This document shows positions 33,026-61,099 of a stretch of DNA of 64,000 nucleotides, piece after piece; within the stretch, counting starts at the first letter, position 1, and the number at the start of each line of letters is the position of its first letter. The notes beneath the pieces are model-generated. The model was given only the letters and a program-made list of their open reading frames with translations. It was not told the DNA's origin and ran no database searches. A program made the translations under genes and the position numbers. The stretch is from the NCBI GenBank assembly GCA_950097015.1, contig CATNEN010000003.1, positions 5,766,001 through 5,830,000 on the forward strand, written 5' to 3'. Source of the stretch: Macrostomum hystrix. Lineage: Eukaryota; Animalia; Platyhelminthes.

Positions 33026-34777
33026 CAGTTTTCAATAGCTGCTTAATAGCCGTTTTCAATGTCCAATATTGTTTTTATTCCTCGGATAAAAATTTATTGC
33101 GTTTAATCCTGCATCAGAAATGTATGAACGAAGATTGATAGTTGTGATGACTATCGATTTCTCTTGGAATTATATGCTGCTTACTCGGGATGATATTCTA
33201 ATAATCAATAAGCTTTGAGAATTTCCTGTGTGGTGCCTGAAATGTGTCAGCATTGATTTTGGAAACATTTTTGCAAAACCCCGTTAAAAATCGCAAATGG
33301 TTTAATGGATGCATTATCTAGCTACACCCCCTCGTATTTGTTAATCTCGACGCACAAAACTCAGACTGAGCCTCATTGGTCAGTTAGACTGGCTAATTCG
33401 AACATAAGAAAATGTAAATAAATTTCTGTTATAAAGCAGTAATTATTTAAGGCCGTGGAAGACAACCAGAAAGAATTTGGAAGATCGGACAAAACAATTT
33501 TGCTTTGAAGCACATCATTCGGACGCTCAAAGGTTTGTAAAGCTGCTCTCTGACTTTCTTGGTTGTCATTGGCAAAAATTGCTTGACAATCCAACAAACT
33601 TTCTCACCAGTATAATGTGGTACCAACCGGAATTGCGCTTAGGGGCTTCAGTGCCAAGTTCCTGAAAATTATAATCAGTTTTTGCCTGCAATAACATTCT
33701 TCCCTGAAACCGTCACTATAGCAATAGCTAGACTGAGACCCATTCACACAGGCAAGGAAAACTTAATTGATTAAAAACCTAGCTCACGCAGTATAAGAAA
33801 AAATACACGACAGCTCCCTTGGAGGTTCCGGGACAACTATTCTCCACTGTGGCACGACTTAGAACTGGACTAGCCAAAGCTAAACAGTTGTTCTGTTGCC
33901 CAGGTCTCCCACGCCAACACACACGCGCACAGGGAGCAATGCCCCTCGCAACTCATCAATATTTAATTATCAAGGTGGACTCAAGGTGCGGTTTCTTCTC
34001 CTGAGCATTGGTCCCATTGGGGAACAGCAATTACACTAAACTTGCAATATGACACCCCTGGATATATACCAAACCAAATGAGGCGAAATGACACCAAATT
34101 TTTATGACACCAAAAACCACAAATCGCGGATATATACCAGTGCAATGTGACAACCCACGCACAAGCCAATTTCCACGGCCCAATTCACATCTCCTATTTC
34201 ATCTCCTCTTCAAAATTTAGTTTAGCGATGCTTAGCTGCCTACTGAGAGCAAATCGAACAAAGACCACTAGAGTGCTCATTCCAGTTTGCCAGAAGAAAA
34301 AAGAAACTACATTCAGAGAAGCACAATCTGATTCAGTCCAAAGTCTAGTGCCACATAGCCATTTTCATAGTAATATTTTGCTGCCGTTCTAATAGAGTAA
34401 TAGTACCATCTATAAGATTCTAAGTCTAAGAGGGCGCAAAATAGCAACTTAACTTTTCATAGACTATTCAAAAGCGATATAAAAGGAGGATCATTCACTC
34501 TCAAGCGCCGTGCAGGAATGAATCCTTTCAACTTTACTCATCTGACTCTTCTTCTCACTCCTCAACATGATCGACAGGCCAGAAACACTTTTTCTGGAAC
34601 AGAAAGACACATGCGTCATGCGCAGGTCTATAAGTTCTTCCATGACCTAAAGCAATGACCTCAAAAATGAGTCCGCTGCTCGTCACCACCACTTCACTAA
34701 TAAAGCCGCTGTGGTGCATATGCCGATGATGATGTGCTGATTGATGCTTGGCGCCGGGCAGACTAGACAGGAGAGAG

Positions 34778-37700
34778 TGAAATGACCCTAGCTACATGAT
34801 ACACGAGCTTCTATGGGAAAAGGTTAAAATGACACCCCATGAACATTGGATATATGGAACTGGTGAAATGACACCACATTTTCTATTGAGATAATAGACG
34901 GTGAAATGACACCCCATTTTCCATTGACCTAATAGACAGTGAAATGACCTTAGCTACCTGATACACGAGCTTCTATGGGAAAAGGTTAAAATGACACCCC
35001 ATGAACATTGGATATACGGAACTGGTGAAATGACACCCCATTTTCCATTGAGCTAATAGACAGTGAAATGACACCACATTTTCTATTGAGCTAATAGACA
35101 GTGAAATGACACCCCATTTTCCATTGAGCTAATAGACAGTGAAATGACCTTAGCTACCTGATACACGAGCTTCTATGGGAAAAGGTTAAAATGACACCCC
35201 ATGAACATTGGATATACGGAACTGGTGAAATGACACCCTTCCCTTCCTTTCAGTTAGTGGAGAGATGAGGTCGGTCTCAATGGATTAGATAAGGCTGTCT
35301 CCAGAGATTAGATGAGGCTGTCGCAATGGATTAGATGAGGCTGTCGCAATGAATTAGATGAGGCTGTCTCCAGAGATTAGATGAGGCTGTCTCAATGGAT
35401 TAGATAGGCTGTCGCAATGGATTAGATGAGGCTGTCTCCAGAGATTAGATGAGGCTGTCGCAATGGATTAGATGAGGCTGTCTCAATGGATTAGATGAGG
35501 CTGTCTCCAGAGATTAGATGAGGCTGTCGCAATGGATTAGATGAGGCTGTCGCAATGGATTAGATGAGGCTGTCTCCAGAGATTAGATGAGGCTGTCTCC
35601 AGAGATTAGATGAGGCTGTCTCCAGAGATTAGATGAGGGTGTCTCAATGGATTATATGAGGCTGTCGCAATGGATTAGATGAGGCTGTCTCAGTAGATTA
35701 GATGAGGCTGTCTCCAGAGATTAGATGAGGCTGTCTCAATGGATTAAATGAGTCTGTCTCAATGGATTTAATAAGGCTGTCTAAATGGATTAGATGAGGC
35801 TGTCTCAATGGATTAGATGAGGCTGTCTCAATGGATTAGATGAGGCTGTCGCAATGGATTAGATGAGGCTGTCTCAATGGATTTATTAAGGCTGTCTAAA
35901 TGGATTAGATGAGGCTGTCTCAATGGATTAGATGAGGCTGTCTCAATGGATTAGATGAGGCTGTCGCAATGGATTAGATGAGGCTGTCTCGATGGATTAG
36001 ATGAGGCTGTCTCAATGGATTAGATGAGGCTGTCTCAATGGATTAGATGAGGCTGTCTCAATGGATTAGATGAGGCTGTCTCAATGGATTAGATGAGGCT
36101 GTCTAAATGGATTAGATGAGAAATATAAAATGCGAGAGTAGAATGACGGCAAAAGAGAATAGAATAATGGAGGAAAGAGAATGTTAGAGAGGTGGTTTGA
36201 AAAAGCACCCAGCTACCTGATACACGAGCTTCAATGGGAAAAGGTTAAAATGACACGCCATGAACATTGGATAAATGAAACTGGTGAAATGACACCACAT
36301 TTTCTATTGAGCTAATAGACAGTGAAATGACACCCCATTTTCCATTGAGCTAATAGACAGTGAAATGACCTTAGCTACCTGATACACAAGCTTCAATGGG
36401 GAAAGGTTAAAATGACACCCCATGAACATTGGATATACGGAACTGGTGAAATGGCACCACATTTTCTATTGAGCTAATAGACAGTGAAATGACACCCCAT
36501 TTTCCATTGAGCTAATAGACAGTGAAATGACCTTAGCTACCTGATACACGAGCTTCTATGGGAAAAGGTTAAAATGACACCCCATGAACATTGGATATAC
36601 GGAACTGGTGAAATGACACCCTTCCCTTCCTTTCAGTTAGTGGAGAGATGAGGTCGGTCTCAATGGATTAGATGAGGCCGTCTCCAGAGATTAGATGAGG
36701 CTGTCGCAATGGATTAGATAAGGCTGTCTCAACGGATTAGATGAGGCTGTCTCTAGAGATAAGATGAGGCTGTTGCAATGGACTTGATAAGGCTGTCTCA
36801 ATGGTTTAGATGAGGCTGTCGCAATGGATTAGATGATGCTGTCTCCAGAGATTAGATGAGGCTGTTGCAATGGACTTGATAAGGCTGTCTCAATGGTTTA
36901 GATGAGGCTGTCGCAATGGATTAGATGAGGCTGTCTCCAGAGATTAGATGAGGCTGTTGCAATGGATTAGATGAGGCTGTCTCAATGGATTAGATGAGGC
37001 TGTCTCAATAGATTAGATGAGGCTGTCTCAATGGATTAGATGAGGCTGTCTCCAGAGATTAGATGAGGCTGTTGCAATGGACTTGATAAGGCTGTCTCAA
37101 TGGTTTAGATGAGGCTGTCGCAATGGATTAGATGAGGCTGTCTCCAGAGATTAGATGAGGCTGTTGCAATGGATTAGATGAGGCTGTCTCAATGGATTAG
37201 ATGAGGCTGTCTCAATAGATTAGATGAGGCTGTCGCAATGGATTAGATGAGGCTGTCTCAATCGATTAGATGAGGCTGTCTCAATGGATTAGATGAGGCT
37301 GTCTCTAGAGATTAGATGAGGCTGTCTCAATGGATTAGATGAGGCTGTCTCAATGGATTAGATTAGGCTGTCTCAATGGATTAGATGAGGCTGTCTCCAG
37401 GGATTAGATGAGGCTGTCGCAATGGATTAGATGAGGCTGTTTCAATGGATTAGATGAGGCTGTCTCAATGGATTAGATGAGGCTGTCTCAATCGATTAGA
37501 TGAGGCTGTCTCAATGGATTAGATGAGGCTGTCTCTAGAGATTAGATGAGGCTGTCTCAATGGATTAGATGAGGCTGTCTCAATGGATTAGATGAGGCTG
37601 TCGCAATGGATTAGATGAGGCTGTCTCAATGGATTAGATGAGGCTGTCTCCAGAGATTAGATGAGGCTGTCTCAATGGATTAGATGAGGCTGTCTCCAGA

Positions 37701-40700
37701 GATTAGATGAGGCTGTCTCAATGGATTAGATGAGGCTGTCTCCAGAGATTAGATGAGGCTGTCTCAATGGATTAGATGAGGCTGTCTCCAGAGATTAGAT
37801 GAGGCTGTCGCAATGGATTAGATGAGGCTGTTTCAATGGATTAGATGAGGCTGTCTCAATGGATTAGATGAGGCTGTCTCAATCGATTAGATGAGGCTGT
37901 CTCAATGGATTAGATGAGGCTGTCTCTAGAGATTAGATGAGGCTGTCTCAATGGATTAGATGAGGCTGTCTCAATGGATTAGATAGGCCGTCTCAATGGA
38001 TTAGATGAGGGTGTCTCCAGAGATTAGATGAGGCTGTCGCAATGGATTAGATGAGGCTGTCGCAATGGATTGATGAGGCTGTCTCAATGGATTAGATGAG
38101 GCTGTCTCCAGAGATTAGATGAGGCTGTCTCAATGGATTAGATGAGGCTGTCTCCAGAGATTAGATGAGGCTGTCTCAATGGATTAGATGAGGCTGTCTC
38201 CAGAGATTAGATGAGGCTGTCTCAATGGATTAGATGAGGCTGTCTCCAGAGATTAGATGAGGCTGTCTCAATGGATTAGATGAGGCTGTCTCCAGAGATT
38301 AGATGAGGCTGTCTCAATGGATTAGATGAGGCTGTCTCCAGAGATTAGATGAGGCTGTCGCAATGGATTAGATGAGGCTGTTTCAATGGATTAGATGAGG
38401 CTGTCTCAATGGATTAGATGAGGCTGTCTCAATCGATTAGATGAGGCTGTCTCAATGGATTAGATGAGGCTGTCTCTAGAGATTAGATGAGGCTGTCTCA
38501 ATGGATTAGATGAGGCTGTCTCAATGGATTAGATAGGCTGTCTCAATGGATTAGATGAGGCTGTCTCCAGGGATTAGATGAGGCTGTCGCAATGGATTAG
38601 ATGAGGCTGTTTCAATGGATTAGATGAGGCTGTCTCAATGGATTAGATGAGGCTGTCTCAATCGATTAGATGAGGCTGTCTCAATGGATTAGATGAGGCT
38701 GTCTCTAGAGATTAGATGAGGCTGTCTCAATGGATTAGATGAGGCTGTCTCAATGGATTAGATGAGGCTGTCTCAATGGATTAGATGAGGCTGTCGCAAT
38801 GGATTAGATGAGGCTGTCTCAATGGATTAGATGAGGCTGTCTCCAGAGATTAGATGAGGCTGTCTCAATGGATTAGATGAGGCTGTCTCCAGAGATTAGA
38901 TGAGGCTGTCTCAATGGATTAGATGAGGCTGTCTCCAGAGATTAGATGAGGCTGTCTCAATGGATTAGATGAGGCTGTCTCCAGAGATTAGATGAGGCTG
39001 TCGCAATGGATTAGATGAGGCTGTTTCAATGGATTAGATGAGGCTGTCTCAATGGATTAGATGAGGCTGTCTCAATCGATTAGATGAGGCTGTCTCAATG
39101 GATTAGATGAGGCTGTCTCTAGAGATTAGATGAGGCTGTCTCAATGGATTAGATGAGGCTGTCTCAATGGATTAGATAGGCCGTCTCAATGGATTAGATG
39201 AGGGTGTCTCCAGAGATTAGATGAGGCTGTCGCAATGGATTAGATGAGGCTGTCGCAATGGATTGATGAGGCTGTCTCAATGGATTAGATGAGGCTGTCT
39301 CCAGAGATTAGATGAGGCTGTCTCAATGGATTAGATGAGGCTGTCTCCAGAGATTAGATGAGGCTGTCTCAATGGATTAGATGAGGCTGTCTCCAGAGAT
39401 TAGATGAGGCTGTCTCAATGGATTAGATGAGGCTGTCTCCAGAGATTAGATGAGGCTGTCTCAATGGATTAGATGAGGCTGTCTCCAGAGATTAGATGAG
39501 GCTGTCTCAATGGATTAGATGAGGCTGTCTCCAGAGATTAGATGAGGCTGTCGCAATGGATTAGATAAGGCTGTCTCAACGGATTAGATGAGGCTGTCTC
39601 TAGAGATAAGATGAGGCTCTTGCAATGGACTTGATAAGGCTGTCTCAATGGTTTAGATGAGGCTGTCGCAATGGATTAGATGAGGCTGTCTCCAGAGATT
39701 AGATGAGGCTGTTGCAATGGATTAGATGAGGCTGTCTCAATGGATTAGATGAGGCTGTCTCAATGGAAAGGATGAGGCTGTCTCAATGGATTAGATGAGG
39801 CTGTCTCAATAGATTAGATGAGGCTGTCTCAATGGATTAGATAAGGCTGTCTCCAGAGATTAGATGAGGCTGTCTCAATGGTTTAGATAAGGCTGTCTCA
39901 TTGGATTAGATGAGGCTGTCTCAATAGATTAGATGAGGCTGTCTCAATGGATTAGATGAGGCTGTCTCAATGGATTAGATGAGGCTGTCTCAATGGATTA
40001 GATGAGGCTGTCTCTAGAGATTAGATGAGGCTGTCTCAATGGATTAGATGAGGCTGTCTCAATGGATTAGATAGGCTGTCTCAATAGATTAGATGAGGCT
40101 GTCTCAATGGATTAGATAGGCTGTCTCAATGGATTAGATGAGGCTGTCTCAATGGATTAGATGTGGCGGTCTCGAGAAATTAGATGGTGCGGTCTCAATG
40201 GATTAGATTAGGCTGTCTCAATGGATTAGATGAGGCTGTCTCAATGGATTAGATGAGGCTGTCTCAATGGATTAGATGAGGCTGTCTCAATGGATTAGAT
40301 GAGGCTGTCTCTAGAGATTAGATGAGGCTGTCTCAATGGATTAGATGAGGCTGTCTCAATGGATTAGATAGGCTGTCTCAATAGATTAGATGAGGCTGTC
40401 TCAATGGATTAGATAGGCTGTCTCAATGGATTAGATGAGGCTGTCTCAATGGATTAGATGAGGCTGTCTCAATGGATTAGATGAGGCTGTCTCAATGGAT
40501 TAGATGAGGCTGTCTCAATGGATTAGATGAGGCTGTCTCAATGGATTAGATGAGGCTGTCTCAATGGATTAGATGAGGCTGTCTCCAGAGATTAGATGAG
40601 GCTGTCTCAATGGATTAGATGAGGCTGTCTCCAGAGATTAGATGAGGCTGTCTCAATGGATTAGATGAGGCTGTCTCCAGAGATTAGATGAGGCTGTCTC

Positions 40701-43556
40701 ATAGGATTAGATGAGGCTGTCTTAAAGGATTAGATGAGGCTGTCTCCAGAGATTAGATGAGGCTGTCGCAATGGATTAGATGAGGCTGTCTCCAGAGATT
40801 AGATGAGGCTGTCTCAATGGATTTGATGAGGCTGTCTCAATGGATTAGATGAGGCTGTCTCAATGGATTAGATGAGGCTGTCTCCAGAGATTAGATGAGG
40901 CTGTCTCAATGGATTAGATGAGGCTGTCTCCAGAGATTAGATGAGGCTGTCTCAATGGATTAGATGAGGCTGTCTCCAGAGATTAGATGAGGCTGTCTCA
41001 ATGGATTAGATGAGGCTGTCTCCAGAGATTAGATGAGGCTGTCTCAATGGATTAGATGAGGCTGTCTCCAGAGATTAGATGAGGCTGTCTCAATGGATTA
41101 GATGAGGCTGTCTCCAGAGATTAGATGAGGCTGTCGCAATGGATTAGATGAGGCTGTTTCAATGGATTAGATGAGGCTGTCTCAATGGATTAGATGAGGC
41201 TGTCTCAATGGATTAGATGAGGCTGTCTCCAGAGATTAGATGAGGCTGTCTCAATGGATTAGATGAGGCTGTCTCCAGAGATTAGATGAGGCTGTCTCAA
41301 TGGATTAGATGAGGCTGTCTCCAGAGATTAGATGAGGCTGTCGCAATGGATTAGATGAGGCTGTCTCAATGGATTAGATGAGGCTGTCTCAATGGATTAG
41401 ATGAGGCTGTCTCTAGAGATTAGATGAGGCTGTCTCAATGGATTAGATGAGGCTGTCTCAATGGATTAGATGAGGCTGTCTCCAGAGATTAGATGAGGCT
41501 GTCTCAATGGATTAGATGAGGCTGTCTCCAGAGATTAGATGAGGCTGTCTCATAGGATTAGATGAGGCTGTCTTAAAGGATTAGATGAGGCTGTCTCCAG
41601 AGATTAGATGAGGCTGTCTCAATGGATTAGATGAGGCTGTCTCCAGAGATTAGATGAGGCTGTCTCAATGGATTAGATGAGGCTGTCTCCAGAGATTAGA
41701 TGAGGCTGTCGCAATGGATTAGATGAGGCTGTTTCAATGGATTAGATGAGGCTGTCTCAATGGATTAGATGAGGCTGTCTCAATGGATTAGATGAGGCTG
41801 TCTCCAGAGATTAGATGAGGCTGTCTCAATGGATTAGATGAGGCTGTCTCCAGAGATTAGATGAGGCTGTCTCAATGGATTAGATGAGGCTGTCTCCAGA
41901 GATTAGATGAGGCTGTCGCAATGGATTAGATGAGGCTGTCTCAATGGATTAGATGAGGCTGTCTCAATGGATTAGATGAGGCTGTCTCTAGAGATTAGAT
42001 GAGGCTGTCTCAATGGATTAGATGAGGCTGTCTCTATGGAATTGTGGTGGGTCTGAAGGGATAATTTAATGTGACTGGTCACGAATTTGGCTCGGCAGCT
42101 GCAGTTATGCAAGTGGCCATTGGCCTTTATATCTGCAACCTGACGATCCTAATTCTCCTGACGCCTTATGTACTGTGACGGACTGTGAACTTACTTTTGC
42201 TGATGCTGGAGAGGCGGTGAGCTGACTTCCCAGTGAAGTGAGCATGCATTCAGCATAAGCAGCTTAAATTATATGCATGTGATTCTTTGGACTAAACTGG
42301 GCTCTCTGAAATCAACTCAGTGCGCTGCCCGATATAGGGAGTGAAAAAACTAGCAAAGGTGTGACTCATGACATCACGATTGATACGATTGTCTCCTATT
42401 GGTCGCGAAACACAATGAATGCAGATCAGTTGATCCTCAATCCTGTTGCCATTTTAACATTTCCCATACACGTGCTTCAATGGGAAATGGTTAAAATGAC
42501 AACCCATGAACATTGGATATACGGAACTGGTGAAATGACACCCCTCCCTTCCATTGAGTTAGTGGAGAGATGAGGTCGGTCTCAATGAATTAGATGTGGC
42601 AGTCTCCAGAGATTAGATAAGGCGGTCGAATGGATTAGATGTGGCCGTCTGCAGAGATCAGATGAGGCTATCGCAATGGATTAGATGAGGCTGTCTCCAG
42701 AGATTTGATGAGGCTGTCTCAATGGATTTGATAAGGCTGTCTCAATGGATTAGATGAGGCTGTCTCATAGGATTAGATGAGGCTGTCTTAAAGGATTAGA
42801 TGAGGCTGTCTCCAGAGATTAGATGAGGCTGTCGCAATGGATTAGATGAGGCTGTCTCCAGAGATTAGATGAGGCTGTCTCAATGGATTTGATGAGGCTG
42901 TCTCAATGGATTAGATGAGGCTGTCTCATAGGATTAGATGAGGCTGTCTTAAAGGATTAGATGAGGCTGTCTCCAGAGATTAGATGAGGCTGTCGCAATG
43001 GATTAGATGAGGCTGTCTCCAGAGATTAGATGAGGCTGTCTCAATGGATTTGATGAGGCTGTCTCAATGGATTTGATAAGGCTGTCTCAATGGATTAGAT
43101 GAGGCTGTCTCAATGGATTAGATGAGGATGTCGCAATGGATTAGATGAGGCTGTCTCCAGAGATTAGATGAGGCTGTCGCAATGGATTAGATGAGGCTGT
43201 CTCCAGAGATTAGATGAGGCTGTCACAATGGATTAGATGAGGCTGTCTCAATGGATTTGATGAGGCTGTCTCAATGGATTTGATAAGGCTGTCTCAATGG
43301 ATTAGATGAGGCTGTCTCAATGGATTAGATGAGGCTGTCTCAGTCGATTAGATGAGGCTGTCTCAATGGATTAGATGAGGCTTTCTCAATGGATTAGATG
43401 AGGCTGTCTTCAGAGATTAGATGAGGCTGTCTCAATGGATTAGATGGGGCGGTCCCAGAGATTCGATGTGGCGGTCTCAATGGATTGGACTTTCAGTCTG
43501 CCAATCAGTCTTTATCGCCACTTTCATCCACTCCAAGGCTCTGAAATGGCCGCTAT
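34778..43556 (+). repeat. Left arm: 23-bp satellite (GATTAGATGAGGCTGTCTCAATG / ...CTCCAGA)n interspersed with ~160-bp GAAATGACACC-rich modules
   Basis: Modules at ~34778-35270, ~36211-36655 and ~42470-42580. Satellite fills 35275-36120, 36660-42040 and 42580-43485. Confidence 0.97.
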
Positions 43557-44733
43557 GAAGCACTAGAGTGCGGCAGTGGAAACTCGGATGTTTCACTCTC
43601 CAAGTCTAACCAATTTCCTGCACTTACTTTCAGTCTGCCCGCCAGTCTTTTACAGGGATAGAGTTAGGAAGAAGGAGCTAGATAGAGACAAATATGATGA
43701 AGATGAAGAAGCTGGAAAATACGAGTATTTCTCCAAGATGGCAGAAATTGGAGATCGCTGTGTGGTTCCTGGCGCAGCCCACTTCCCCATCCCACCCCAG
43801 CCCAGTCAATGTCTAGTTGCATCCTTGAATGGCACAGCATGAAGTGTTTCCGATTATTGTGTCGGTGGCTGTTGCTTAAGGCTGTTGGTGCGACTTTCAA
43901 CAAACTAGAAATTTAGCACGTTTGAGCCAACTTGTGATTTTCCCTTTCCAAAGGGAATCTTTTTTGAGAGCACACTCAATCCATAGCGTGCCGTGAAATT
44001 TGACTTTTTGGCTCAGTCAGATCGATGGGAAAATGAGGGAGACAATAACTTGAGCTCCAGTGATCCTGTCTTCTTTGTGATTACGCAATTGAATTCCCAT
44101 CTTTAAGCTCAGCTAAAAATTTCAACATGCCATTCGCACATTATATCATGGCGCATATACATACCTGAGCCTGCCGTGAAATGGGATTTATGGGTACAAA
44201 GGGTCGAGAGGTTAATATGAAGGGATCAGGGAGACATTGATTTGATCTCGCGTGGTCGTTGTTTGCTTTGAGATTACGCAACGCACAGCTCATCATGAAC
44301 ACGAAACTAAAATGCAAAATAAGCAGAAGAGAAATCGAAAATGAAACAGTTTCCTATATTTTGGGAAGAGTTGCCACACATTTAAGGCACCCATTGCGCA
44401 ACATTAGAAGCATCCCACTTCCAGTTTATTTATAGGTCGTATCTAGGACTCCAAAAGTTTCTCACCCACGTCTGAGTTTTACCCTCGTACATAGGATCAG
44501 CACAGATGATCTTGTATTAGGTATGGAGTATGAGAATGTTCTGTCCAGTTTTAGTTTGTTACGAGCGGAATTCCTCCTCCGGAGGAAGTTGAGGGGATAG
44601 AACTTTTTTGAGGATCTTAGAAATTGAAATTTCACAATTAAAATAGCCTATAGCCTTCCTCGGAAAATTTCCGATTTTCCTATATAAGTTTCAACGCTGA
44701 GTTGCCAGTATTCTAGGAGGAGATGTCGAACTG

Positions 44734-44925
<192 letters not shown>

Positions 44926-45212
44926 TGCTGTCCTCTTGGGATTTTTTCCTTTAAAGGCATACAAGTCATTCAATAATTTTGACAGGATTTTGCATGCACA
45001 GCAAGCCAATTTGCTCTTCCAAAAAGGAAATGGTGATGGTGATTGAAGACGGGGAGAAGGGGCGAGAGAGGTAGAGTGAAGGACATAGTGAAAATTACAA
45101 AACATGCAAAATGAGAAGCGAGAACATTTTGATACACGCCGAATTTGTACTGGAGGACGAAACATTGTAATCATGATTATAGAGGAAGACAAGGGAAATA
45201 CAATGAGAAGCT

Positions 45213-45265
45213 GAGATAGAGAAGAGAGAGATAGAGAAGAGAGAGAGAGAGAGCAGTGAGAGAGA

Positions 45266-45299
<34 letters not shown>

Positions 45300-45300
45300 C

Positions 45301-45333
<33 letters not shown>

Positions 45334-45388
45334 CAGTGAGAGAGAGAGAGACAGAGAGAGAGACAGAGAGAGAGACAGAGAGAGAGAC

Positions 45389-45438
<50 letters not shown>

Positions 45439-45566
45439 TGAGAGAGAGAGAGACAGAGAGAGAGACAGAGAGAGAGACAGAGAGAGAGACAGAGAGAGAG
45501 ACAGAGAGAGAGACAGAGAGAGAGAGACAGAGAGAGACAGTGAGAGAGAGAGACAGAGAGAGAGAC

Positions 45567-45601
<35 letters not shown>

Positions 45602-45746
45602 CAGTGAGAGAGAGAGACAGAGAGAGAGACAGAGAGAGAGACAGAGACAGAGAGAGAGACAGAGAGAGAGACAGAGAGAGAGACAGAGAGAGAGACAGAG
45701 AGAAAGACAGAGAGAGAGAGACACAGAGAGAGACAGAGAGAGAGAC

Positions 45747-45797
<51 letters not shown>
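45213..45797. repeat. (GA)n/(GAGAGAGAGACA)n microsatellite
   Basis: Visible. It generates spurious SL/ER ORFs. Confidence 0.97.
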
Positions 45798-45799
<2 letters not shown>

Positions 45800-46118: not shown

Positions 46119-46124
46119 TATAAA
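46119..46124 (+). promoter_or_regulatory. Possible TATA box of the recombinase gene
   Basis: TATAAA ~75 bp upstream of ATG 46195, with ATTGG (CCAAT reverse) boxes at ~46019 and ~46060. Confidence 0.4.
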
Positions 46125-49100: not shown

Positions 49101-51394
49101 GAGCAAGCCCGTCCACCGCCGCCACTGCCGCCGATTCGGCTGACTACGCCTTCGCCCCTGCAGAGGACGACTTTGCTGCCGCCGAAGTAGAATTTGCTGC
49201 CGGAACCTGCGTTGTCGATGACTGCAGCGACATGTTCGAGACTTTTGACGCCGAAGTCTTCTTGGCGGCCGATGACTGCGACATCATCGAGCCGATCTGC
49301 TCCACCGGGGTTGGCGCTGCGGCCACGAAGAAGATCGCCGCGCCACAGAAACGCAAGGCGCCCAAGGCAGCGTCGAAGGCAGATGCATCAGCCGCAAAGC
49401 GACGGGCGGTGGCCGCTGAGTTTGCGGCCCAAGATCGCCTGAAAGCGGCATCGACGAAGGCGAAGGCGAGCAGCCGCGCCGCCGTTACCGCCGCCTCTGC
49501 CGTGTCGACCACAGGGGCTGCCGCTGCCGCCGCCACCTCGGCCTGTACTGACCCCCTTGCAGGCGCTGCGGCCACGAAGAAGATCACCGCGCCACAGAAA
49601 CGCAAGGCGCCCAAGGCAGCGTCGAAAGCAAATGCGGCAGCCGCAAAGCGGGCGGTGGCCGCTGAGTTTGCGGCCCAAGATCGCCTGAAAGCGGCATCGA
49701 CCAAGGCGAAGGCGAGCAGCCGCGCCGCCGTTACCGCCGCCTCTGCCGTGTCGACCACAGGGGCTGCCGCTGCCGCCGCCACCTCGGCCTGTACTGACCC
49801 CCTTGCAGGCGCTGCGGCCACGAAGAAGATCACCGCGCCACAGAAACGCAAGGCGCCCAAGGCAGCGTCGAAAGCAAATGCGGCAGCCGCAAAGCGGGCG
49901 GTGGCCGCTGAGTTTGCGGCCCAAGATCGCCTGAAAGCGGCATCGACCAAGGCGAAGGCGAGCAGCCGCGCCGCCGTTACCGCCGCCTCTGCCGTGTCGA
50001 CCACAGGGGCTGCCGCTGCCGCCGCCACCTCGGCCTGTACTGACCCCCTTGCAGGCGCTGCGGCCACGAAGAAGATCACCGCGCCACAGAAACGCAAGGC
50101 GCCCAAGGCAGCGTCGAAAGCAAATGCGGCAGCCGCAAAGCGACGGGCGGTGGCCGCTGAGTTTGCAGCCCAAGATCGCCTGAAAGCGGCATCGACCAAG
50201 GCGAAGGCGAGCAGCCGCGCCGCCGTGACAGCCGCCTCTGCCGTGTCGGTCACTGGGGCTGCCGCTGCCGCCGCCACCTCGGCCTGCACCGACTCCGCCT
50301 CCGAGGCCACCGCAGTGGCACACGATGACACCAAGGCGAGCAGCCACGCCGACGTTGCCGCCACCGCCATCGCAACCGACGACGCCGCCCAGGCTGCAGG
50401 CGAGCCAGCTGCCGTCGACACCGCCCAGGCTGCAGGCGAGCCAGCTGCCGTCGACACCGCCCAGGCTGCAGGCGAGCCAGCTGCCGTCGACACCGCCCAG
50501 GCAGCAGGCGAGCCAGCTGCCGTCGACACCGCCCAGGCTGCAGGCGAGCCAGCTGCCGTCGACACCGCCCAGGCTGCAGCCGTCGACACCGCCCATGCTG
50601 CAGGCGAGCCAGCTGCCGTCGACACCGCCCATGCTGCAGGCAAGCCTGCTGCCGTCGACACCGCCAATGCTGCAGGCGAGCCAGCTGCCGTCGACACCGC
50701 TTATGCTGCAGGCAAGCCTGCTGCCGTCGACACCGCCCAGGCTGCAGGCGAGCCAGCTGCCGTCGACACCGCCCAGGCTGCAGGCGAGCCAGCTGCCGTC
50801 GACACCGCCCAGGCAGCAGGCGAGCCAGCTGCCGTCGACACCGCCCAGGCTGCAGGCGAGCCAGCTGCCGTCGACACCGCCCAGGCTGCAGCCGTCGACA
50901 CCGCCCATGCTGCAGGCGAGCCAGCTGCCGTCGACACCGCCCATGCTGCAGGCAAGCCTGCTGCCGTCGACACCGCCCAGGCTGCAGGCGAGCCAGCTGC
51001 CGTCGACAACGCCCAGGCTGCAGGCGAGCCTGCTGCCGTTGACACCGCCCATGCTGCAGGCAAGCCTGCTGCCGTCGACACCGCCCATGCTGCAGGCGAG
51101 CAAGCGGCGGATGGCTACAAGATGGCTGACGTCGTAGTAGCCAAAATTGCGGGCTATTCACCATGGCCAGCTCTTGTATGTCCATCCCCCCGCGGCGGCT
51201 TTATTCTCCGGGGCCAACGAGTGCACGTGGCATTCCTGGAGCCAGGCCGCCCGCGCGCCTGGGTGCCAGTGGCGGATGTCTACCTGTTCACTGGTGAAGC
51301 GCCACAGTGTCAGCCGGCGGAGCTTCAGGAGGCTTACAACGAAGCGCTAAACCTCCTGAAAGTACCTGCACAGCAGCGCTTTGATCTTCAGTAA
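46195..51394 (+). CDS. Tyrosine recombinase fused to two C2H2 zinc fingers (N-term), Lys/Ala-rich repeats and a C-terminal PWWP domain; exons 46195-47144, 47488-47947, 48174-48348, 49083-51394 (~1298 aa)
   Basis: C2H2 fingers 'CPFDGC...HVRKKH' and 'CRFC...HVRRQH'. SAM-like core-binding segment 'YWRSFDGGRYKPSTIRQM'. Catalytic motifs 'NANRQD' (R), 'VADHKS' (K), 'TATKFRK' (HxxR-equivalent), 'LLHSEGVQRRHY' (H, Y). PWWP 'DVVVAKIAGYSPWPALV...VHVAFL...RAWV'. Three GT-AG introns give one open frame (950+460+175+2312 = 3897 nt). Confidence 0.85.
49313..50292 (+). repeat. Coding tandem repeat: 4 x 246-249 bp (82-83 aa Lys/Ala-rich unit containing PQKRKAPK)
   Basis: Unit starts at 49313, 49562, 49808 and 50054. 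Confidence 0.95.
50378..51100 (+). repeat. Coding tandem repeat: ~20 x 36 bp (AAVDTAQAAGEP)
   Basis: Visible in DNA and protein, always in frame. Confidence 0.95.
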
Positions 51395-52016
51395 TTTTTG
51401 GAAGTGACTGGGACAAACTGAGACAAGTGTATAGCTGCTCTATTTTACGCTTCTATTTCTACACTATTATACTATTCTGCTATTTCTACTATAGCAATTG
51501 TAAATTTCCTTAGCATTGTAATGCACAGAAAATGAGTTTTTGTTGCACAAACGATGATTGTGTGTTTGCAATTGGTCAATGTGCAATGCTTCCATTGCGA
51601 AGATGGGAAAGGATGTGACTGATTAAAACTTCACATTTCAAAAAAAAGCGGGTCATCAATTTGAACAGGGCACCAAGAGTCTGCAACAAAATCTCTAACT
51701 GAAATAGTTGCTTGTCGCACAAATTGTGTTTTAATGCAGCTGCTTATATGCTACTTTTACTGCATTTTCTTCACATTTTTTCATTTTAATTTCTACACTA
51801 ATTAGTACAAAATGTACTGCGTTGGCAACGCTTCTTTATGACCACAAGTCAATGACTACTTCTGTGTATGTGCACTCACATTTTACTCCATAATTTGCCA
51901 AACTTGACTTGTGAAAGTCAGCTCACTCTTCGCTAAACAATGCAAAAGTAATTTTTCAAAGCTGTCAAGGAGTGGAAAGACTTCGTCTTTGATCTCAAAA
52001 GTGCTCTTCAATATTT

Positions 52017-55000
52017 ATAGCGGCCCTTTCAGAGCCTTGGAGTGGATGAAAATGGCGATAAAGACTGACCGACAAGACTGAAAGTCCAATCATTGAGACC
52101 ACCTCATCTAATCCATTGCGACAGCCTCATCTAATCCATTGGGACAGCCTCTGGAGACGGCCACATCTAATCCATTGAGACAGCCTCATCCTTTCCATTG
52201 AGACAGCCTCATCTTTTCCATTGAGACCGCCTCATCTAATCCATTGAGACAGCCTCATCTAATCTACTGAGACAGCCTCATCTAATCCATTGAGACAGCC
52301 TCATCTAATCTCTAGAGACAGCCTCATCTAATCCATTGAGACAGCCTCATCTAATCCATTGCGATAGCCTCATCTAATCCATTGAGACAGCCTCATCTAA
52401 TCTCTGGAGACAGCCTCATCAAATCCATTGAGACAGCCTCATCTAATCTCTGGAGACAGCCTCATCTAATCCATTGAGACAGCCTCATCTAATCCATTGA
52501 GACAGCCTTATCTAATCCATTGCGACAGCCTCATCTAATCTCTGGAAACAGCCTCATCTAATCCATTGAGACTGACCTCATCTCTCCACTAACTCAATGG
52601 AAGGGAGGGGTGTCATTTCACCAGTTCCGTTTATCCAATGTTCATGGGGTGTCATTTTAACATTTTCCCATAGAAGCTCGTGTATCAGGTAGCTGGGTGC
52701 TTTTTCAAACCACCTCTCTAACATTCTCTCTCCTCCATTATTCTATTCGCTTTTGCTGTCATTCTACTCTCGCATTTTATATTTCTCATCTAATCCATTT
52801 AGACAGCCTCATCTAATCCATTGAGACAGCCTCATCTAATCCATCGAGACAGCCTCATCTAATCCATTGAGACAGCCTCATCTAATCCATTGAGACAGCC
52901 TCATCTAATCTCTAGAGACAGCCTCATCTAATCCATTGAGACAGCCTCATCTAATCCATTGCAACAGCCTCATCTAATCTCTGGAGACAGCCTCATCTAA
53001 TCTATTGAAACAGCCTCATCCTTTCCATTGAGACAGCCTCATCTTTTTCTTTGAGACCGCCTCATCTAATCTCTGAAGACAGCCTCATCTAATCCATTTA
53101 GACAGCTTCATCTAATCCATTGAGACAGCCTCATCTAATCTCTGGAGACAGCCTCATCTAATCTCTGGAGACAGCCTCATCTAATCCATTGAAACAGCCT
53201 CATCCTTTCCATTGAGACAGCCTCATCTTTTTCATTGAGACCGCCTCATCTAATCCATTGAGACAGCCTCATCTAATCGATTGAGACAGCCTCATCTAAT
53301 CCATTGAGACAGCCTCATCTAATCCATTGAGACAGCCTCATCTAATCCATTGAGACAGCCTAATCTAATCCATTGAGACCGCACTATCTAATTTCTCGAG
53401 ACCGCCACATCTAATCCATTGAGACAGCCTCATCTAATCTATTGAGACAGCCTCATCTAATCCAATGAGACAGCCTTATCTAATCCATTGAGACAGCCTT
53501 ATCTAATCCATTGCGACAGCCTCATCTAATCTCTGGAGACAGCCTTATCTAATCCATTGAGACCGACCTCATCTCTCCACTAACTGAAAGGAAGGGAAGG
53601 GTGTCATTTCACCAGTTTCATATATCCAATGTTCATGGGGTGTCATTTTAACCTTTTCCCATAGAAGCTCGTGTATCAGGTAGCTAAGGTCATTTCACTG
53701 TCTATTAGCTCAATGGAAAATGGGGTGTCATTTCACCGTCTATTAGCTCAATAGAAAATGTGGTGTCATTTCACCAGTTCCATATATCCAATGTTCATGG
53801 GGTGTCATTTTAACCTTTTCCCATTGAAGCTCGTGTATCAGGTAGCTGGGTGCTTTTTCAAACCACCTCTCTAACATTCTCTCTCCTCCATTATTCTATT
53901 CTCTTTTGCCGTCATTCTACTCTCGCATTTTATATTTCTCATCTAATCCATTTAGACAGCCTCATCTAATCCATTGAGACAGCCTCATCTAATCCATTGA
54001 GCCAGCCTCATCTAATCCATTGAGACAGCCTCATCTAATCCATTGAGACAGCCTCATCTAATCCATTGAGACAGCCTAATCTAATCCATTGAGACCGCAC
54101 TATCTAATTTCTCGAGACCGCCACATCTAATCCATTGAGACAGCCTCATCTAATCTATTGAGACAGCCTCATCTAATCCAATGAGACAGCCTTATCTAAT
54201 CCATTGAGACAGCCTTATCTAATCCATTGCGACAGCCTCATCTAATCTCTGGAGACAGCCTTATCTAATCCATTGAGACCGACCTCATCTCTCCACTAAC
54301 TGAAAGGAAGGGAAGGGTGTCATTTCACCAGTTTCATATATCCAATGTTCATGGGGTGTCATTTTAACCTTTTCCCATAGAAGCTCGTGTATCAGGTAGC
54401 TAAGGTCATTTCACTGTCTATTAGCTCAATGGAAAATGGGGTGTCATTTCACCGTCTATTAGCTCAATAGAAAATGTGGTGTCATTTCACCAGTTCCATA
54501 TATCCAATGTTCATGGGGTGTCATTTTAACCTTTTCCCATTGAAGCTCGTGTATCAGGTAGCTATAAGGTCATTTCACTGTCTATTAGCTCAATGGAAAA
54601 TGGGGTGTCATTTCACTGTCTATTAGCTCAATAGAAAATGTGGTGTCATTTCACCAGTTCCATATATCCAATGTTCATGGGGTGTCATTTTAACCTTTTC
54701 CCATTGAAGCTCGTGTATCAGGTAGCTGGGTGCTTTTTCAAACCACCTCTCTAACATTCTCTCTCCTCCATTATTCTATTCTCTTTTGCCGTCATTCTAC
54801 TCTCGCATTTTATATTTCTCATCTAATCCATTTAGACAGCCTCATCTAATCCATTGAGACAGCCTCATCTAATCCATTGAGCCAGCCTCATCTAATCCAT
54901 TGAGACAGCCTCATCTAATCCATTGAGACAGCCTCATCTAATCCATTGAGACAGCCTCATCTAATCCATTGAGACAGACTCATCTAATCCATTGAGACAG

Positions 55001-58000
55001 CCTATCTAATCCATTGAGACAGCCTCATCTAATCCATTGAGACAGCCTCATCTAATCTCTAGAGACAGCCTCATCTAATCTCTAGAGACAGCCTCATCTA
55101 ATCCATTGAGACAGCCTCATCTAATCCATTGAAACAGCCTCATCTAATCTCTGAAGACAGCCTCATCTAATCCATTGAGACAGCCTCATCTAATCGATTG
55201 AGACAGCCTCATCTAATCCATTGAGACAGCCTCATCTAATCCATTGAGACAGCCTCATCTAATCCATTGAGACAGCCTAATCTAATCCATTGAGACCGCA
55301 CCATCTAATTTCTCGAGACCGCCACATCTAATCTATTGAGACAGCCTCATCTAATCCAATGAGACAGCCTTATCTAATCCATTGCGACAGCCTCATCTAA
55401 TCTCTGGAGACAGCCTTATCTAATCCATTGAGACCGACCTCATCTCTCCACTAACTGAAAGGAAGGGAAGGGTGTCATTTCACCAGTTCCGTATATCCAA
55501 TGTTCATGGGGTGTCATTTTAACCTTTTCCCATAGAAGCTCGTGTATCAGGTAGCTAAGGTCATTTCACTGTCTATTAGCTCAATGGAAAATGGGGTGTC
55601 ATTTCACTGTCTATTAGCTCAATAGAAAATGTGGTGTCATTTCACCAGTTCCGTATATCCAATGTTCATGGGGTGTCATTTTAACCTTTTCCCATAGAAG
55701 CTCGTGTATCAGGTAGCTATAAGGTCATTTCACTGTCTATTAGCTCAATGGAAAATGGGGTGTCATTTCACTGTCTATTAGCTCAATAGAAAATGTGGTG
55801 TCATTTCACCAGTTCCGTATATCCAATGTTCATGGGGTGTCATTTTAACCTTTTCCCATTGAAGCTCGTGTATCAGGTAGCTGGGTGCTTTTTCAAACCA
55901 CCTCTCTAACATTCTCTCTCCTCCATTATTCTATTCTCTTTTGCTGTCATTCTACTCTCGCATTTTATATTTCTCATCTAATCCATTTAGACAGCCTCAT
56001 CTAATCCATTGAGACAGCCTCATCTAATCCATTGAGCCAGCCTCATCTAATCCATTGAGACAGCCTCATCTAATCCATTGAGACAGCCTCATCTAATCCA
56101 TTGAGACAGCCTAATCTAATCCATTGAGACCGCACTATCTAATTTCTCGAGACCGCCACATCTAATCCATTGAGACAGCCTCATCTAATCTATTGAGACA
56201 GCCTCATCTAATCCAATGAGACAGCCTTATCTAATCCATTGAGACAGCCTTATCTAATCCATTGCGACAGCCTCATCTAATCTCTGGAGACAGCCTTATC
56301 TAATCCATTGAGACCGACCTCATCTCTCCACTAACTGAAAGGAAGGGAAGGGTGTCATTTCACCAGTTTCATATATCCAATGTTCATGGGGTGTCATTTT
56401 AACCTTTTCCCATAGAAGCTCGTGTATCAGGTAGCTAAGGTCATTTCACTGTCTATTAGCTCAATGGAAAATGGGGTGTCATTTCACCGTCTATTAGCTC
56501 AATAGAAAATGTGGTGTCATTTCACCAGTTCCATATATCCAATGTTCATGGGGTGTCATTTTAACCTTTTCCCATTGAAGCTCGTGTATCAGGTAGCTGG
56601 GTGCTTTTTCAAACCACCTCTCTAACATTCTCTCTCCTCCATTATTCTATTCTCTTTTGCCGTCATTCTACTCTCGCATTTTATATTTCTCATCTAATCC
56701 ATTTAGACAGCCTCATCTAATCCATTGAGACAGCCTCATCTAATCCATTGAGCCAGCCTCATCTAATCCATTGAGACAGCCTCATCTAATCCATTGAGAC
56801 AGCCTCATCTAATCCATTGAGACAGCCTCATCTAATCCATTGAGACAGACTCATCTAATCCGTTGAGACAGCCTATCTAATCCATTGAGACAGCCTCATC
56901 TAATCCATTGAGACAGCCTCATCTAATCTCTAGAGACAGCCTCATCTAATCTCTAGAGACAGCCTCATCTAATCCATTGAGACAGCCTCATCTAATCCAT
57001 TGAAACAGCCTCATCTAATCTCTGAAGACAGCCTCATCTAATCCATTGAGACAGCCTCATCTAATCGATTGAGACAGCCTCATCTAATCCATTGAGACAG
57101 CCTCATCTAATCCATTGAGACAGCCTCATCTAATCCATTGAGACAGCCTAATCTAATCCATTGAGACCGCACCATCTAATTTCTCGAGACCGCCACATCT
57201 AATCTATTGAGACAGCCTCATCTAATCCAATGAGACAGCCTTATCTAATCCATTGCGACAGCCTCATCTAATCTCTGGAGACAGCCTTATCTAATCCATT
57301 GAGACCGACCTCATCTCTCCACTAACTGAAAGGAAGGGAAGGGTGTCATTTCACCAGTTCCGTATATCCAATGTTCATGGGGTGTCATTTTAACCTTTTC
57401 CCATAGAAGCTCGTGTATCAGGTAGCTAAGGTCATTTCACTGTCTATTAGCTCAATGGAAAATGGGGTGTCATTTCACTGTCTATTAGCTCAATAGAAAA
57501 TGTGGTGTCATTTCACCAGTTCCGTATATCCAATGTTCATGGGGTGTCATTTTAACCTTTTCCCATTGAAGCTCGTGTATCAGGTAGCTGGGTGCTTTTT
57601 CAAACCACCTCTCTAACATTCTCTCTCCTCCATTATTCTATTCTCTTTTGCCGTCATTCTACTCTCGCATTTTATATTTCTCATCTAATCCATTTAGACA
57701 GCCTCATCTAATCCATTGAGACAGCCTCATCTAATCCATTGAGCCAGCCTCATCTAATCCATTGAGACAGCCTCATCTAATCCATTGAGACAGCCTCATC
57801 TAATCCATTGAGACAGACTCATCTAATCCATTGAGACAGCCTATCTAATCCATTGAGACAGCCTCATCTAATCCATTGAGACAGCCTCATCTAATCTCTA
57901 GAGACAGCCTCATCTAATCTCTAGAGACAGCCTCATCTAATCCATTGAGACAGCCTCATCTAATCCATTGAAACAGCCTCATCTAATCTCTGAAGACAGC

Positions 58001-59870
58001 CTCATCTAATCCATTGAGACAGCCTCATCTAATCGATTGAGACAGCCTCATCTAATCCATTGAGACAGCCTCATCTAATCCATTGAGACAGCCTCATCTA
58101 ATCCATTGAGACAGCCTAATCTAATCCATTGAGACCGCACCATCTAATTTCTCGAGACCGCCACATCTAATCTATTGAGACAGCCTCATCTAATCCAATG
58201 AGACAGCCTTATCTAATCCATTGCGACAGCCTCATCTAATCTCTGGAGACAGCCTTATCTAATCCATTGAGACCGACCTCATCTCTCCACTAACTGAAAG
58301 GAAGGGAAGGGTGTCATTTCACCAGTTCCGTATATCCAATGTTCATGGGGTGTCATTTTAACCTTTTCCCATAGAAGCTCGTGTATCAGGTAGCTAAGGT
58401 CATTTCACTGTCTATTAGCTCAATGGAAAATGGGGTGTCATTTCACTGTCTATTAGCTCAATAGAAAATGTGGTGTCATTTCACCAGTTCCGTATATCCA
58501 ATGTTCATGGGGTGTCATTTTAACCTTTTCCCATAGAAGCTCGTGTATCAGGTAGCTAAGGTCATTTCACTGTCTATTAGCTCAATGGAAAATGGGGTGT
58601 CATTTCACTGTCTATTAGCTCAATAGAAAATGTGGTGTCATTTCACCAGTTCCGTATATCCAATGTTCATGGGGTGTCATTTTAACCTTTTCCCATAGAA
58701 GCTCGTGTATCAGGTAGCTATAAGGTCATTTCACTGTCTATTAGCTCAATGGAAAATGGGGTGTCATTTCACTGTCTATTAGCTCAATAGAAAATGTGGT
58801 GTCATTTCACCAGTTCCGTATATCCAATGTTCATGGGGTGTCATTTTAACCTTTTCCCATTGAAGCTCGTGTATCAGGTAGCTGGGTGCTTTTTCAAACC
58901 ACCTCTCTAACATTCTCTCTCCTCCATTATTCTATTCTCTTTTGCTGTCATTCTACTCTCGCATTTTATATTTCTCATCTAATCCATTTAGACAGCCTCA
59001 TCTAATCCATTGAGACAGCCTCATCTAATCCATTGAAACAGCCTCATCTAATCTCTGAAGACAGCCTCATCTAATCCATTGAGACAGCCTCATCTAATCG
59101 ATTGAGACAGCCTCATCTAATCCATTGAGACAGCCTCATCTAATCCATTGAGACAGCCTCATCTAATCCATTGAGACAGCCTAATCTAATCCATTGAGAC
59201 CGCACCATCTAATTTCTCGAGACCGCCACATCTAATCTATTGAGACAGCCTCATCTAATCCAATGAGACAGCCTTATCTAATCCATTGCGACAGCCTCAT
59301 CTAATCTCTGGAGACAGCCTTATCTAATCCATTGAGACCGACCTCATCTCTCCACTAACTGAAAGGAAGGGAAGGGTGTCATTTCACCAGTTCCGTATAT
59401 CCAATGTTCATGGGGTGTCATTTTAACCTTTTCCCATAGAAGCTCGTGTATCAGGTAGCTAAGGTCATTTCACTGTCTATTAGCTCAATGGAAAATGGGG
59501 TGTCATTTCACTGTCTATTAGCTCAATAGAAAATGTGGTGTCATTTCACCAGTTCCGTATATCCAATGTTCATGGGGTGTCATTTTAACCTTTTCCCATA
59601 GAAGCTCGTGTATCAGGTAGCTATAAGGTCATTTCACTGTCTATTAGCTCAATGGAAAATGGGGTGTCATTTCACTGTCTATTAGCTCAATAGAAAATGT
59701 GGTGTCATTTCACCAGTTCCGTATATCCAATGTTCATGGGGTGTCATTTTAACCTTTTCCCATTGAAGCTCGTGTATCAGGTAGCTGGGTGCTTTTTCAA
59801 ACCACCTCTCTAACATTCTCTCTCCTCCATTATTCTATTCTCTTTTGCTGTCATTCTAATCTCGCATTTT
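52017..59870 (-). repeat. Right arm: reverse-complement of the left-arm satellite and modules, arranged as ~8 higher-order units
   Basis: (CATTGAGACAGCCTCATCTAATC)n alternating with GGTGTCATTTC modules. The junction motif GACCTCATCTCTCCACTAACT recurs at ~52575, 53565, 54280, 55435, 56315, 57306, 58273 and 59340. Confidence 0.97.
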
Positions 59871-61099
59871 TTATCTTCACTGCTTGATTCGCTCTCTCAT
59901 TGTCTCATTATTTTACTGTCTTCTGCCATTCAGCTCTTCTGTCCCTCTCTCTATCATTCTCTAGCTTCCTGCATCTCTCCCTCGCTCACTCTGCCCTCCT
60001 GGCTCTCCTAGTACAATGTTTAGCGTTCAGTTTGCTGTTTAGGTATATTTGCTACATATGTAATTCATTTAGCTTTTTGATCTGCACTTGCGAGCCACTT
60101 TTGTCAACTCTCATGCTGAGACACGTGCGATTCAAGTTCCAATTCTGTTGATTTTTGCTGAAAGTAGCACAGAGCGTGGTGAAACTCCCTTTTGTGGGTT
60201 TCCCCTCGAAAAAAGTTTTATTGACTGTTTTCAATATTGTTTCATTCCTGACTTGACTCGGTGTCACAATGCAAGTGTCATTTTGCATTTTTGCAAGCGT
60301 GACATATATCCGCTTTGTAGGTGTCACTTTAAAGGTTTGTTAGTGACTATATCCAGGGCAGAAAAAAAATGGGTGTCATTTTAAACGTTTGGTGCACTGC
60401 CCCGTGTGAAGGGGTCCGGGCTTCCAGTGCAATCGAATCCGATGGGAAAGCGACAGAACTCATCTCGAACTACCACAGTCCATTCCCACCGGCCACTGCA
60501 GTCGGCGATGCTGATGTGACAACCTGGGTGAAGATTCTCGCTCCAACCTCGTCAAAACTAAATGCACGTGCTCCGGAATATTAGCTATAATTTGGGCACA
60601 GTTTTACAGTCAGAATCACGCAAACCAAAAACCATATTGGAAAAAGCGGAGCAGAAAAAAGAGGCCAAGAGTGGCTGTCCCAATTCAGCGAACCAACTGG
60701 CAAAAGCTTTAAACACGAAAAACAGAAAATTGAACTTTGCTTCGGCGGATGCAGCAACCGAAGAATTGGAAGTCAGTTAGGAGAAGAAAATAATCCGCCT
60801 AAAGAGTTCTTCTTCTGCTCTACAGTTAGCATCGACCCGCCGGATCGATGGAGCGGATAGAAGTTCATCTGTGCTCATAATTGGAGAATCTTTTGTCACG
60901 CACGGAGTGGCAACGATTAAAGGCCGCATGGCGCCTCCCAATTTGACATATGACACTTGTCATGAAAATTAAATTAAATGACAGCCCGGATAGGGCGACA
61001 GCAGCAGTCAATCTGGCACCAGATGAAGACGGAAGAAAATCGAAGCGCTGCATAAATTTGCAGGAAAGCGGGCTAAGAGGCTGCGCCACGATAAACGCC

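Follow-up and report, generated by a model that had tools for sequence, protein, structure and literature searches.

Crypton DNA transposons (Goodwin 2003) and foldback-type transposons are the two described classes of element whose features meet in a block of DNA that we analyzed in the flatworm Macrostomum hystrix. The block lies in a stretch of 64,000 nucleotides (assembly GCA_950097015.1, contig CATNEN010000003.1, positions 5,766,001 to 5,830,000), here called the window. It has a spliced tyrosine recombinase (YR) gene in a central loop, arms that repeat a motif module in one polarity, and the same motifs mirrored at the outer edges. We give roughly even chances to the reading that it is a YR-only, functionally Crypton-like selfish element with a foldback architecture and a recombinase of a previously unclassified metazoan YR family; the block may be a still-intact resident copy of such an element. 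None of the named families compared below accommodates it, though in its workings it would combine two of them, Crypton and foldback. The original prediction, that no known system has this layout, overlooked the foldback-type transposons and the yeast 2-micron plasmid.

Cryptons have a YR as their sole enzyme, can contain introns, are proposed to pass through an excised circle, and have been domesticated repeatedly in animals (Kojima & Jurka 2011, PMC3212892). The block resembles them in being eukaryotic and in having a YR as its only transposition enzyme, with neither a reverse transcriptase (RT) nor a DDE transposase. Cryptons, however, lack terminal inverted repeats (TIRs), the animal ones having no terminal repeats at all, and carry at most 4-6-bp direct repeats, whereas the block has kb-scale inverted arms. 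Kb-scale inverted satellite arms together with C2H2 fingers and a PWWP domain, as found in the block (the PWWP domain putatively), have not been reported for any Crypton. The YR of CryptonA is DUF3504 (PMC3212892, PMC13465315). CryptonA YRs match this model while the block protein does not, a comparison that covers the CryptonA clade only.

Foldback-type transposons, such as Drosophila FB, Galileo, Tetris and nematode Tm1, have a loop, sometimes coding, set between long TIRs that consist internally of tandem repeats; their arms vary in repeat number, and the TIR repeats of Tetris gave rise to satellite arrays (PMC3573991, PMC4079207, PMC3169594), as the original prediction proposed for the block. 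The block shares with them the long inverted arms of tandem repeats around a central region. In contrast, the foldback-type enzymes are DDE transposases (P, MULE; Galileo belongs to the P superfamily) and the block gene encodes a YR. Foldback-type elements also have TIR homology that reaches the tips and target-site duplications (TSDs), whereas the tips of the block do not align and no TSD was seen.

In layout, the block can be likened to the yeast 2-micron plasmid, in that a YR gene lies between inverted repeats. The two inverted repeats of the plasmid hold the recombinase sites, and the unique segment that they enclose, which contains the YR gene, is flipped by recombination. Unlike the block, the plasmid is episomal rather than chromosomal, measures 6.3 kb, has a single FRT in each of its 599-bp repeats and lacks satellite arrays. 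Its FLP/FRT system is cited in the Crypton literature (PMC3212892).

Other YR systems differ more in gene content. The integrase of Tn1549 was among the best structural matches of the recombinase family of the block. In elements of the Tn916/Tn1549 type, Int binds inverted ends that are imperfect, and excision yields circles; these elements differ from the block in being prokaryotic and conjugative and in having many genes and no long arms. DIRS elements are similar in combining a YR with inverted terminal repeats, but they have RT, RNase H and methyltransferase genes and an internal complementary region, none of which is in the block. Starships are giant, YR-encoding elements, some with TIRs (PMC13465315). 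They are fungal, with a DUF3435 captain at the 5′ end plus cargo, whereas the block is from an animal, has a central gene and gave no DUF3435 match. The telomere-associated YRs of endogenous nimaviruses have C2H2 zinc-binding, N-terminal SAM-like and YR domains and are associated with tandem repeats (PMC10871703). They lie in crustacean viral genomes of hundreds of kb and are likened to the block protein by description only. Readings of the block as a DIRS, Starship, Polinton or Helitron element were rejected, as none of their genes is present.

The recombinase gene and its family

The core contains one gene, as predicted originally, and its exons are listed in Table 1. Searches and folds of the window protein were made with single exons, queried one at a time, and not with the joined protein. 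A TATAAA sequence lies 71 nt 5′ of the ATG (46195), and the donor of exon 1 has the consensus AAG/GTAAGT. For exon 3, the sequence can be read in two ways: translation stops at a TAG (48351-48353), or a donor GT at 48349 joins it in frame to 49083 (acceptor 49081-49082). The gene thus has three spliceosomal-type introns, or two if exon 3 uses its own stop. Exon 1 matched the Pfam model C2H2_ASCIZ (4.1e-7), and the end of exon 4 matched PWWP (6.2e-8; 33.5 bits against a cut-off of 25.6); exon 2 had no Pfam match. The exons have a GC content of 0.57-0.61 (0.68 for the entire repeat-rich exon 4) and a GC content at third codon positions (GC3) of 0.59-0.72, and the introns have a GC content of 0.29-0.40. 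Neighbouring host exons have a GC content of 0.47-0.60 and GC3 of 0.50-0.71 (0.55-0.60 and 0.61-0.71 for the long ones). The fingers and PWWP were the only Pfam matches in the core, in agreement with the predicted lack of RT, DDE transposase, helicase and capsid genes. Rfam and tRNA scans gave no match.

The Lys/Ala-rich repeats and the PWWP domain probably belong to the recombinase gene, judging from splice phase. Splice phase is all that ties the PWWP domain to it, because exons 3 and 4 showed no significant similarity to P0003, the relative from Macrostomum lignano, though P0003 also ends in Lys/Ala-rich repeats. The open reading frame (ORF) with the PWWP domain contains young coding tandem repeats, four copies of 246 bp (97% identity; 49313-50293) and 21 copies of 36 bp (88%; 50376-51105), and its protein repeats are Lys/Ala-rich and of the 'AAGEPAAVDTAQ' type. 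At the other end of the gene, the (TAGA)n tract and the GA-rich array of ~580 bp lie directly 5′ of the recombinase promoter.

The identification of the gene as a YR gene, made in the original prediction, held by the fold of a relative and by the active-site residues, and not by sequence profiles; together, fold and residues support a tyrosine recombinase as the product. An AlphaFold2 model of the relative P0002, built from a 12-row alignment that included the window exons, had a mean predicted local distance difference test score (pLDDT) of 72.8, with values of 85-95 in the catalytic part. In Foldseek comparisons with PDB, nearly all of its top matches were YRs: XerA (5hxy; E=3.6e-4, probability 1.00), archaeal Xer (4a8e), Tn1549 Int, Cre, XerD, lambda Int and, among the others, poxvirus topoisomerase. 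All top matches in BFVD were YRs (E down to 1.1e-4, probability 1.00), among them integrases of phages, giant viruses, hytrosaviruses and nudiviruses as well as VLF-1. The P0002 model has the two-domain YR fold, with a core-binding and a catalytic domain. A model of the window protein from exon 2 by itself (pLDDT 62.5) was too poor to decide its fold. In exon 2, R20, H48-K49, R118, H143 and Y152 are invariant in seven sequences, so that five of the six canonical YR positions are occupied as expected. The spacings in this family (R-K 29, R-H 25, H-Y 9) are near those of Cre (28, 23 and 9). The window copy has no frame disruption and keeps all the listed catalytic residues.

When exon 2 was searched with phmmer in a set of 1.84 billion representatives, six proteins matched (clusters at 50% identity), and none of the representatives was more than 31% identical to the window recombinase. 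Five of the six have the full architecture of two fingers, helical domain and catalytic domain; the other is noise from unrelated repeats. The N-terminal halves of P0001-P0005 are colinear with exon 1. One family cluster, the closest relative with a named source, is the hypothetical protein Mlig028483 of the flatworm M. lignano, from three loci (PAA91811.1, PAA87763.1 and PAA93120.1); the remaining clusters come from ENA or Logan assemblies and one JGI metagenome contig. This contig (Ga0193947_1003596, 1-2502; locus L001), environmental and eukaryotic, was the one locus found in the metagenome scan. It is 2.5 kb long, has no flanks and encodes a recombinase relative with introns. Since these introns sit elsewhere than those of the window gene, intron positions are not conserved in the family. 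A homologous-protein search with exon 1 had no match, and one with the family profile found P0002 and P0009 only. The viral contigs scanned had neither recombinase relatives nor the satellite, and many annotated animal proteomes had no orthologues of the window recombinase. Judged from these sequence searches, the rare and patchy distribution would fit selfish DNA better than a conserved host gene. Every eukaryotic YR known in 2011 was the product of a mobile element, and Cryptons usually survive in very few copies (PMC3212892).

Inverted arms, inner repeats and outer edges

The mirror symmetry that had been claimed for the block was found again, and the remapped arms and core (Table 1) agree in length with the predicted ~8.8, ~8.5 and ~7.9 kb. 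The inverted-repeat search gave 5579 inverted pairs between 35-43.5 kb and 52-60 kb, the longest being 1063 nt with 91% identity. GC skew is mirrored as well, from +0.31 to +0.37 across 36-42 kb and from -0.21 to -0.31 across 52-60 kb. Tandem Repeats Finder and our own labelling of the repeats resolved a higher-order repeat common to both arms: an 86-bp linker, a 23-bp satellite in n copies, a 29-bp junction, and 1.5-3.5 copies of a 162-bp unit. The 23-bp satellite has two alternating variants, and the 162-bp unit contains 38-bp subrepeats. The number of higher-order units is unequal, with two to three plus one 5.4-kb array of the 23-mer, the largest of its satellite blocks, in the left arm and eight in the right arm. 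A 24-nt motif of the 162-bp unit is on the plus strand in all nine copies in the left arm and on the minus strand in all 24 copies in the right arm; there was no match elsewhere in the window, for a chance expectation of 0. The left arm also has a private 418-bp insert (42048-42465) in place of an expected linker and unit; nothing like this insert occurs in the right arm or in any other part of the window.

The inverted homology does not end with the arrays but carries on, at each side of the core, for ~72 bp of unique DNA (43488-43559 and 52014-52086), with ~91% identity. Because the homology enters unique DNA beside the core, the arms are one inverted duplication rather than two separate arrays. 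Within the right arm, higher-order units share 98-100% identity, and between the arms they share ~98%. The arrays (98%) are therefore more alike than the unique DNA at the inner edge (~91%), which indicates concerted evolution between the arms, an indication drawn from few differences: five mismatches and two indels in ~72 bp of the inner repeat against about five differences in 248 for the units.

At the outer edges, the short inverted termini of the original prediction were not alignable inverted repeats; what is present is a pair of oppositely oriented motif clusters. The best inverted local alignment of the two ends scored 26, compared with 21.9 +/- 2.5 (maximum 34) for shuffles and 22 for the direct orientation. 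Each edge has three to four TGACACC-type motifs and two GGATATA motifs in about 100-120 bp (34050-34154 on the plus strand; 60260-60378 on the minus strand). In the rest of the window, TGACACC occurs at 0.32/kb and GGATATA at 0.11/kb, so that the edge clusters are significant. The 162-bp unit begins with TGACACC and GGATATA in the same order as in the edge clusters. The left cluster is a candidate left end or recombinase-binding module, from its motif content. The pentamer GGTCC, read from the sequence, is common to both edges, which is within chance. A canonical YR core site, with two inverted 11-13-bp binding elements and a 6-8-bp spacer, was looked for in the units and none was recognizable.

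Table 1. Features of the block and of its flanks in the window (positions are those of the window)
Feature	Position	Strand	Length	Remarks
Rab gene	exons 28758-29012, 29871-30332	+		flank
Left outer motif cluster	34034-34160	+		TGACACC at 34050, 34089, 34105; TGACAAC at 34148; GGATATA at 34060, 34128
Left spacer	34161-34771		611 bp	unique
Left arm	34772-43565		8.79 kb	
Left arm arrays	34772-43487	+		162-bp-unit blocks 34772-35237, 36211-36620; fragment 42466-42542; linker 36125-36210; 23-bp satellite blocks
Left inner unique inverted repeat	43488-43565	+		~91% identity to 52014-52086
Core	43566-51999		8.43 kb	
Core upstream non-coding	43566-46194	+		(TAGA)n 44782-44926; GA-rich array 45213-45796; TATAAA 46119-46124
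Exon 1	46195-47144	+		two C2H2 zinc fingers and helical core-binding-like domain; donor GT 47145
Exon 2	47488-47947	+		catalytic domain; R20, H48-K49, T115, R118, H143, Y152 invariant (numbering of 47489-47947)
Exon 3	48174-48348	+		58 codons + 1 base; GC3 0.63
Putative exon 4	49083-51394	+		Lys/Ala-rich coding tandem repeats, then C-terminal PWWP domain
Core downstream non-coding	51395-52013	+		AT-rich, GC 0.35
Right arm	52000-59874		7.87 kb	
Right inner unique inverted repeat	52014-52086	-		
Right arm arrays	52087-59874	-		8 higher-order units (23-bp satellite, 162-bp unit, 86-bp linker)
Right spacer	59875-60258		384 bp	unique
Right outer motif cluster	60259-60394	-		GGTGTCA at 60260, 60320, 60372; TATATCC at 60305, 60348 (reverse complements)
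iGluR-like gene	from about 60950	+		flank

The flanks are ordinary host genes, as had been proposed: a Rab gene and a gene like those of ionotropic glutamate receptors (iGluR). The window also contains an ORF for a rhodopsin-family G protein-coupled receptor (1785-2573, plus strand; 7tm_1, 1.7e-21) and adenylyl cyclase sequences on the minus strand (3965-7594 and 23357-24277; catalytic domain, 5.4e-22, and N-terminal membrane region), whose domains are in very long single exons across ~20 kb; a homologous-protein search with the cyclase ORF had no match. An inverted pair of 113 nt (32206-32318 and 32730-32842) is 88% identical, and a 250-300-bp sequence near the Rab gene (about 29150-29500) recurs in inverted orientation 3.5 kb away (32790-33030); these look like copies of a small interspersed repeat, similar to miniature inverted-repeat transposable elements or short interspersed nuclear elements and unrelated to the block.

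At least ten mutually unrelated minisatellite arrays, with periods of 13-25 bp and lengths of 0.3-1.6 kb, are in the window (1-898, 10488-11057, 12672-12969, 13238-14538, 14972-16583, 16953-17678, 18038-18767, 19736-20947, 21882-22358 and 30335-31312), mostly in introns and intergenic DNA of the adenylyl cyclase and Rab region. Arrays of short period are thus a general habit of this genome, and the satellite filling of the arms is partly a genome property. The arrays of the predicted satellite-filled arms are real; such filling is not peculiar to the block, since 13-25-bp minisatellites occur throughout the window.

Transposition, domestication or inversion

The original idea that the arms multiply end-like motif modules was supported by the shared motifs and their polarity. 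A second part of it did not hold in its simple sense: YR sites in inverted orientation give inversion and not excision, so that the arms cannot be simple excision substrates. Were the block a selfish element, the zinc fingers and the core-binding domain would recognize the TGACACC/GGATATA modules, and the two outermost modules would synapse for staggered cleavage by the YR at both ends. The excised circle would then reintegrate, as proposed for Cryptons and as elements of the Tn916/Tn1549 type do, and the PWWP domain may tether the enzyme to methylated chromatin and bias the choice of target. Exchange among direct modules of one arm, either YR-mediated or by unequal homologous recombination, would make the arrays grow or shrink, and exchange between the inverted arms would flip the core and homogenize the arms. 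Such exchange could explain the 98-100% identical units, their unequal copy numbers, and arrays more alike than the inner edge. Mobility and the binding-array idea are plausible, and beyond the anatomy they are what we infer. The novelty of the block is conditional on mobility.

Several observations weigh against a selfish element. For the enzyme, the position three residues before the second catalytic Arg, a His in canonical YRs, is invariably Thr (T-x-x-R) in window exon 2, P0001-P0005 and P0007; Phage_integrase, DUF3504, DUF3435 and other YR models in Pfam, PHROGs and NCBIfam gave no match at E<=1; a sequence-profile search of PDB found no YR; and hhalign of the family profile with Cre, lambda Int and HP1 Int gave a probability below 1%. 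For the ends, foldback TIRs are homologous to their tips, whereas the outer ends of the block do not align and are parted from the arms by spacers of mutually unrelated DNA. The outer clusters could be simply decayed edges of the arrays, and no TSD or terminal direct repeat stood out at the block edges. One copy of the block is visible, and minisatellites are everywhere in the genome, to judge by the window. GC, GC3 and the exon-intron contrast are host-like. Despite the ~9% divergence of the inner repeat, ~1300 codons have stayed open, suggesting that the gene is under selection where it now lies. If it is fused to a PWWP chromatin reader, it would in this respect be like domesticated Crypton genes.

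Several of these observations fit an alternative that we regard as a substantial minority possibility, a resident, domesticated zinc finger-YR-PWWP chromatin gene that derives from a transposable element, serves the host and lies in a satellite palindrome. The arms would then be a local inverted duplication of a minisatellite array, kept similar by gene conversion, and the outer clusters old, decayed monomers of the array. Intact frames next to a diverged inner repeat, ends that do not align, host-like composition, spliceosomal-type introns, a chromatin-reader domain and minisatellites throughout the window all speak for it, and Crypton YRs have a history of domestication in animals (PMC3212892). 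Against it, all catalytic residues are kept here, whereas domesticated DUF3504 genes mostly lost theirs (PMC3212892). The lack of orthologues in many annotated animal proteomes and the different intron positions in L001 also argue against domestication, and motif modules of strict polarity, mirrored about the gene, are hard to explain without a link between the gene and the repeats.

The symmetry could also come from a chromosomal module of the 2-micron (FLP/FRT) type, which would flip the 8.4-kb core and drive turnover of the arrays without transposition. Established knowledge favours this much, that tyrosine recombination at inverted sites gives inversion, and the YR gene does lie in a unique segment between inverted repeats with repeated candidate sites, in arms homogenized (98%) beyond their inner edges (~91%). 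We consider it unlikely, as the units have no recognizable canonical core site, only one orientation of the core is in evidence, and no function is known for a switch of this kind at a site flanked by Rab and iGluR genes. An assembly artefact, either a foldback or chimeric join of long reads or mis-resolved satellite arrays, is very improbable. Long satellite arrays are error-prone and some higher-order units are 100% identical. A palindrome at the level of reads, however, would give near-identical arms, whereas these differ in unit number and organization, and the left one has its private insert; in addition, the flanks are different genes, the inner inverted repeat has diverged, and there are no Ns. 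A simple palindromic artefact was rejected because of the structural difference between the arms.

To return to the selfish element, a broader form of this reading, which we put forward tentatively and think somewhat doubtful, is that the block represents a new superfamily of eukaryotic DNA transposons. Its members would have a zinc finger-YR-PWWP recombinase and a foldback architecture with arms made of their own end modules, the enzyme would expand, flip and homogenize these arms, and the elements could found satellites at new loci. If the block is mobile, it would be the first known joining of Crypton-like YR transposition with a foldback architecture and satellite-seeding arms, and would add an animal YR family invisible to Pfam, PHROGs and NCBIfam models. 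Because of this invisibility, such elements are probably missed in current annotation of transposable elements. If it is a resident gene, a chromatin-tethered animal YR that is catalytically intact by its residues would be a rare candidate for programmed DNA rearrangement. A recombinase that has its own binding modules as the repeat unit would, if true, provide a concrete mechanism by which satellites arise, arrays turn over and local inversions occur.

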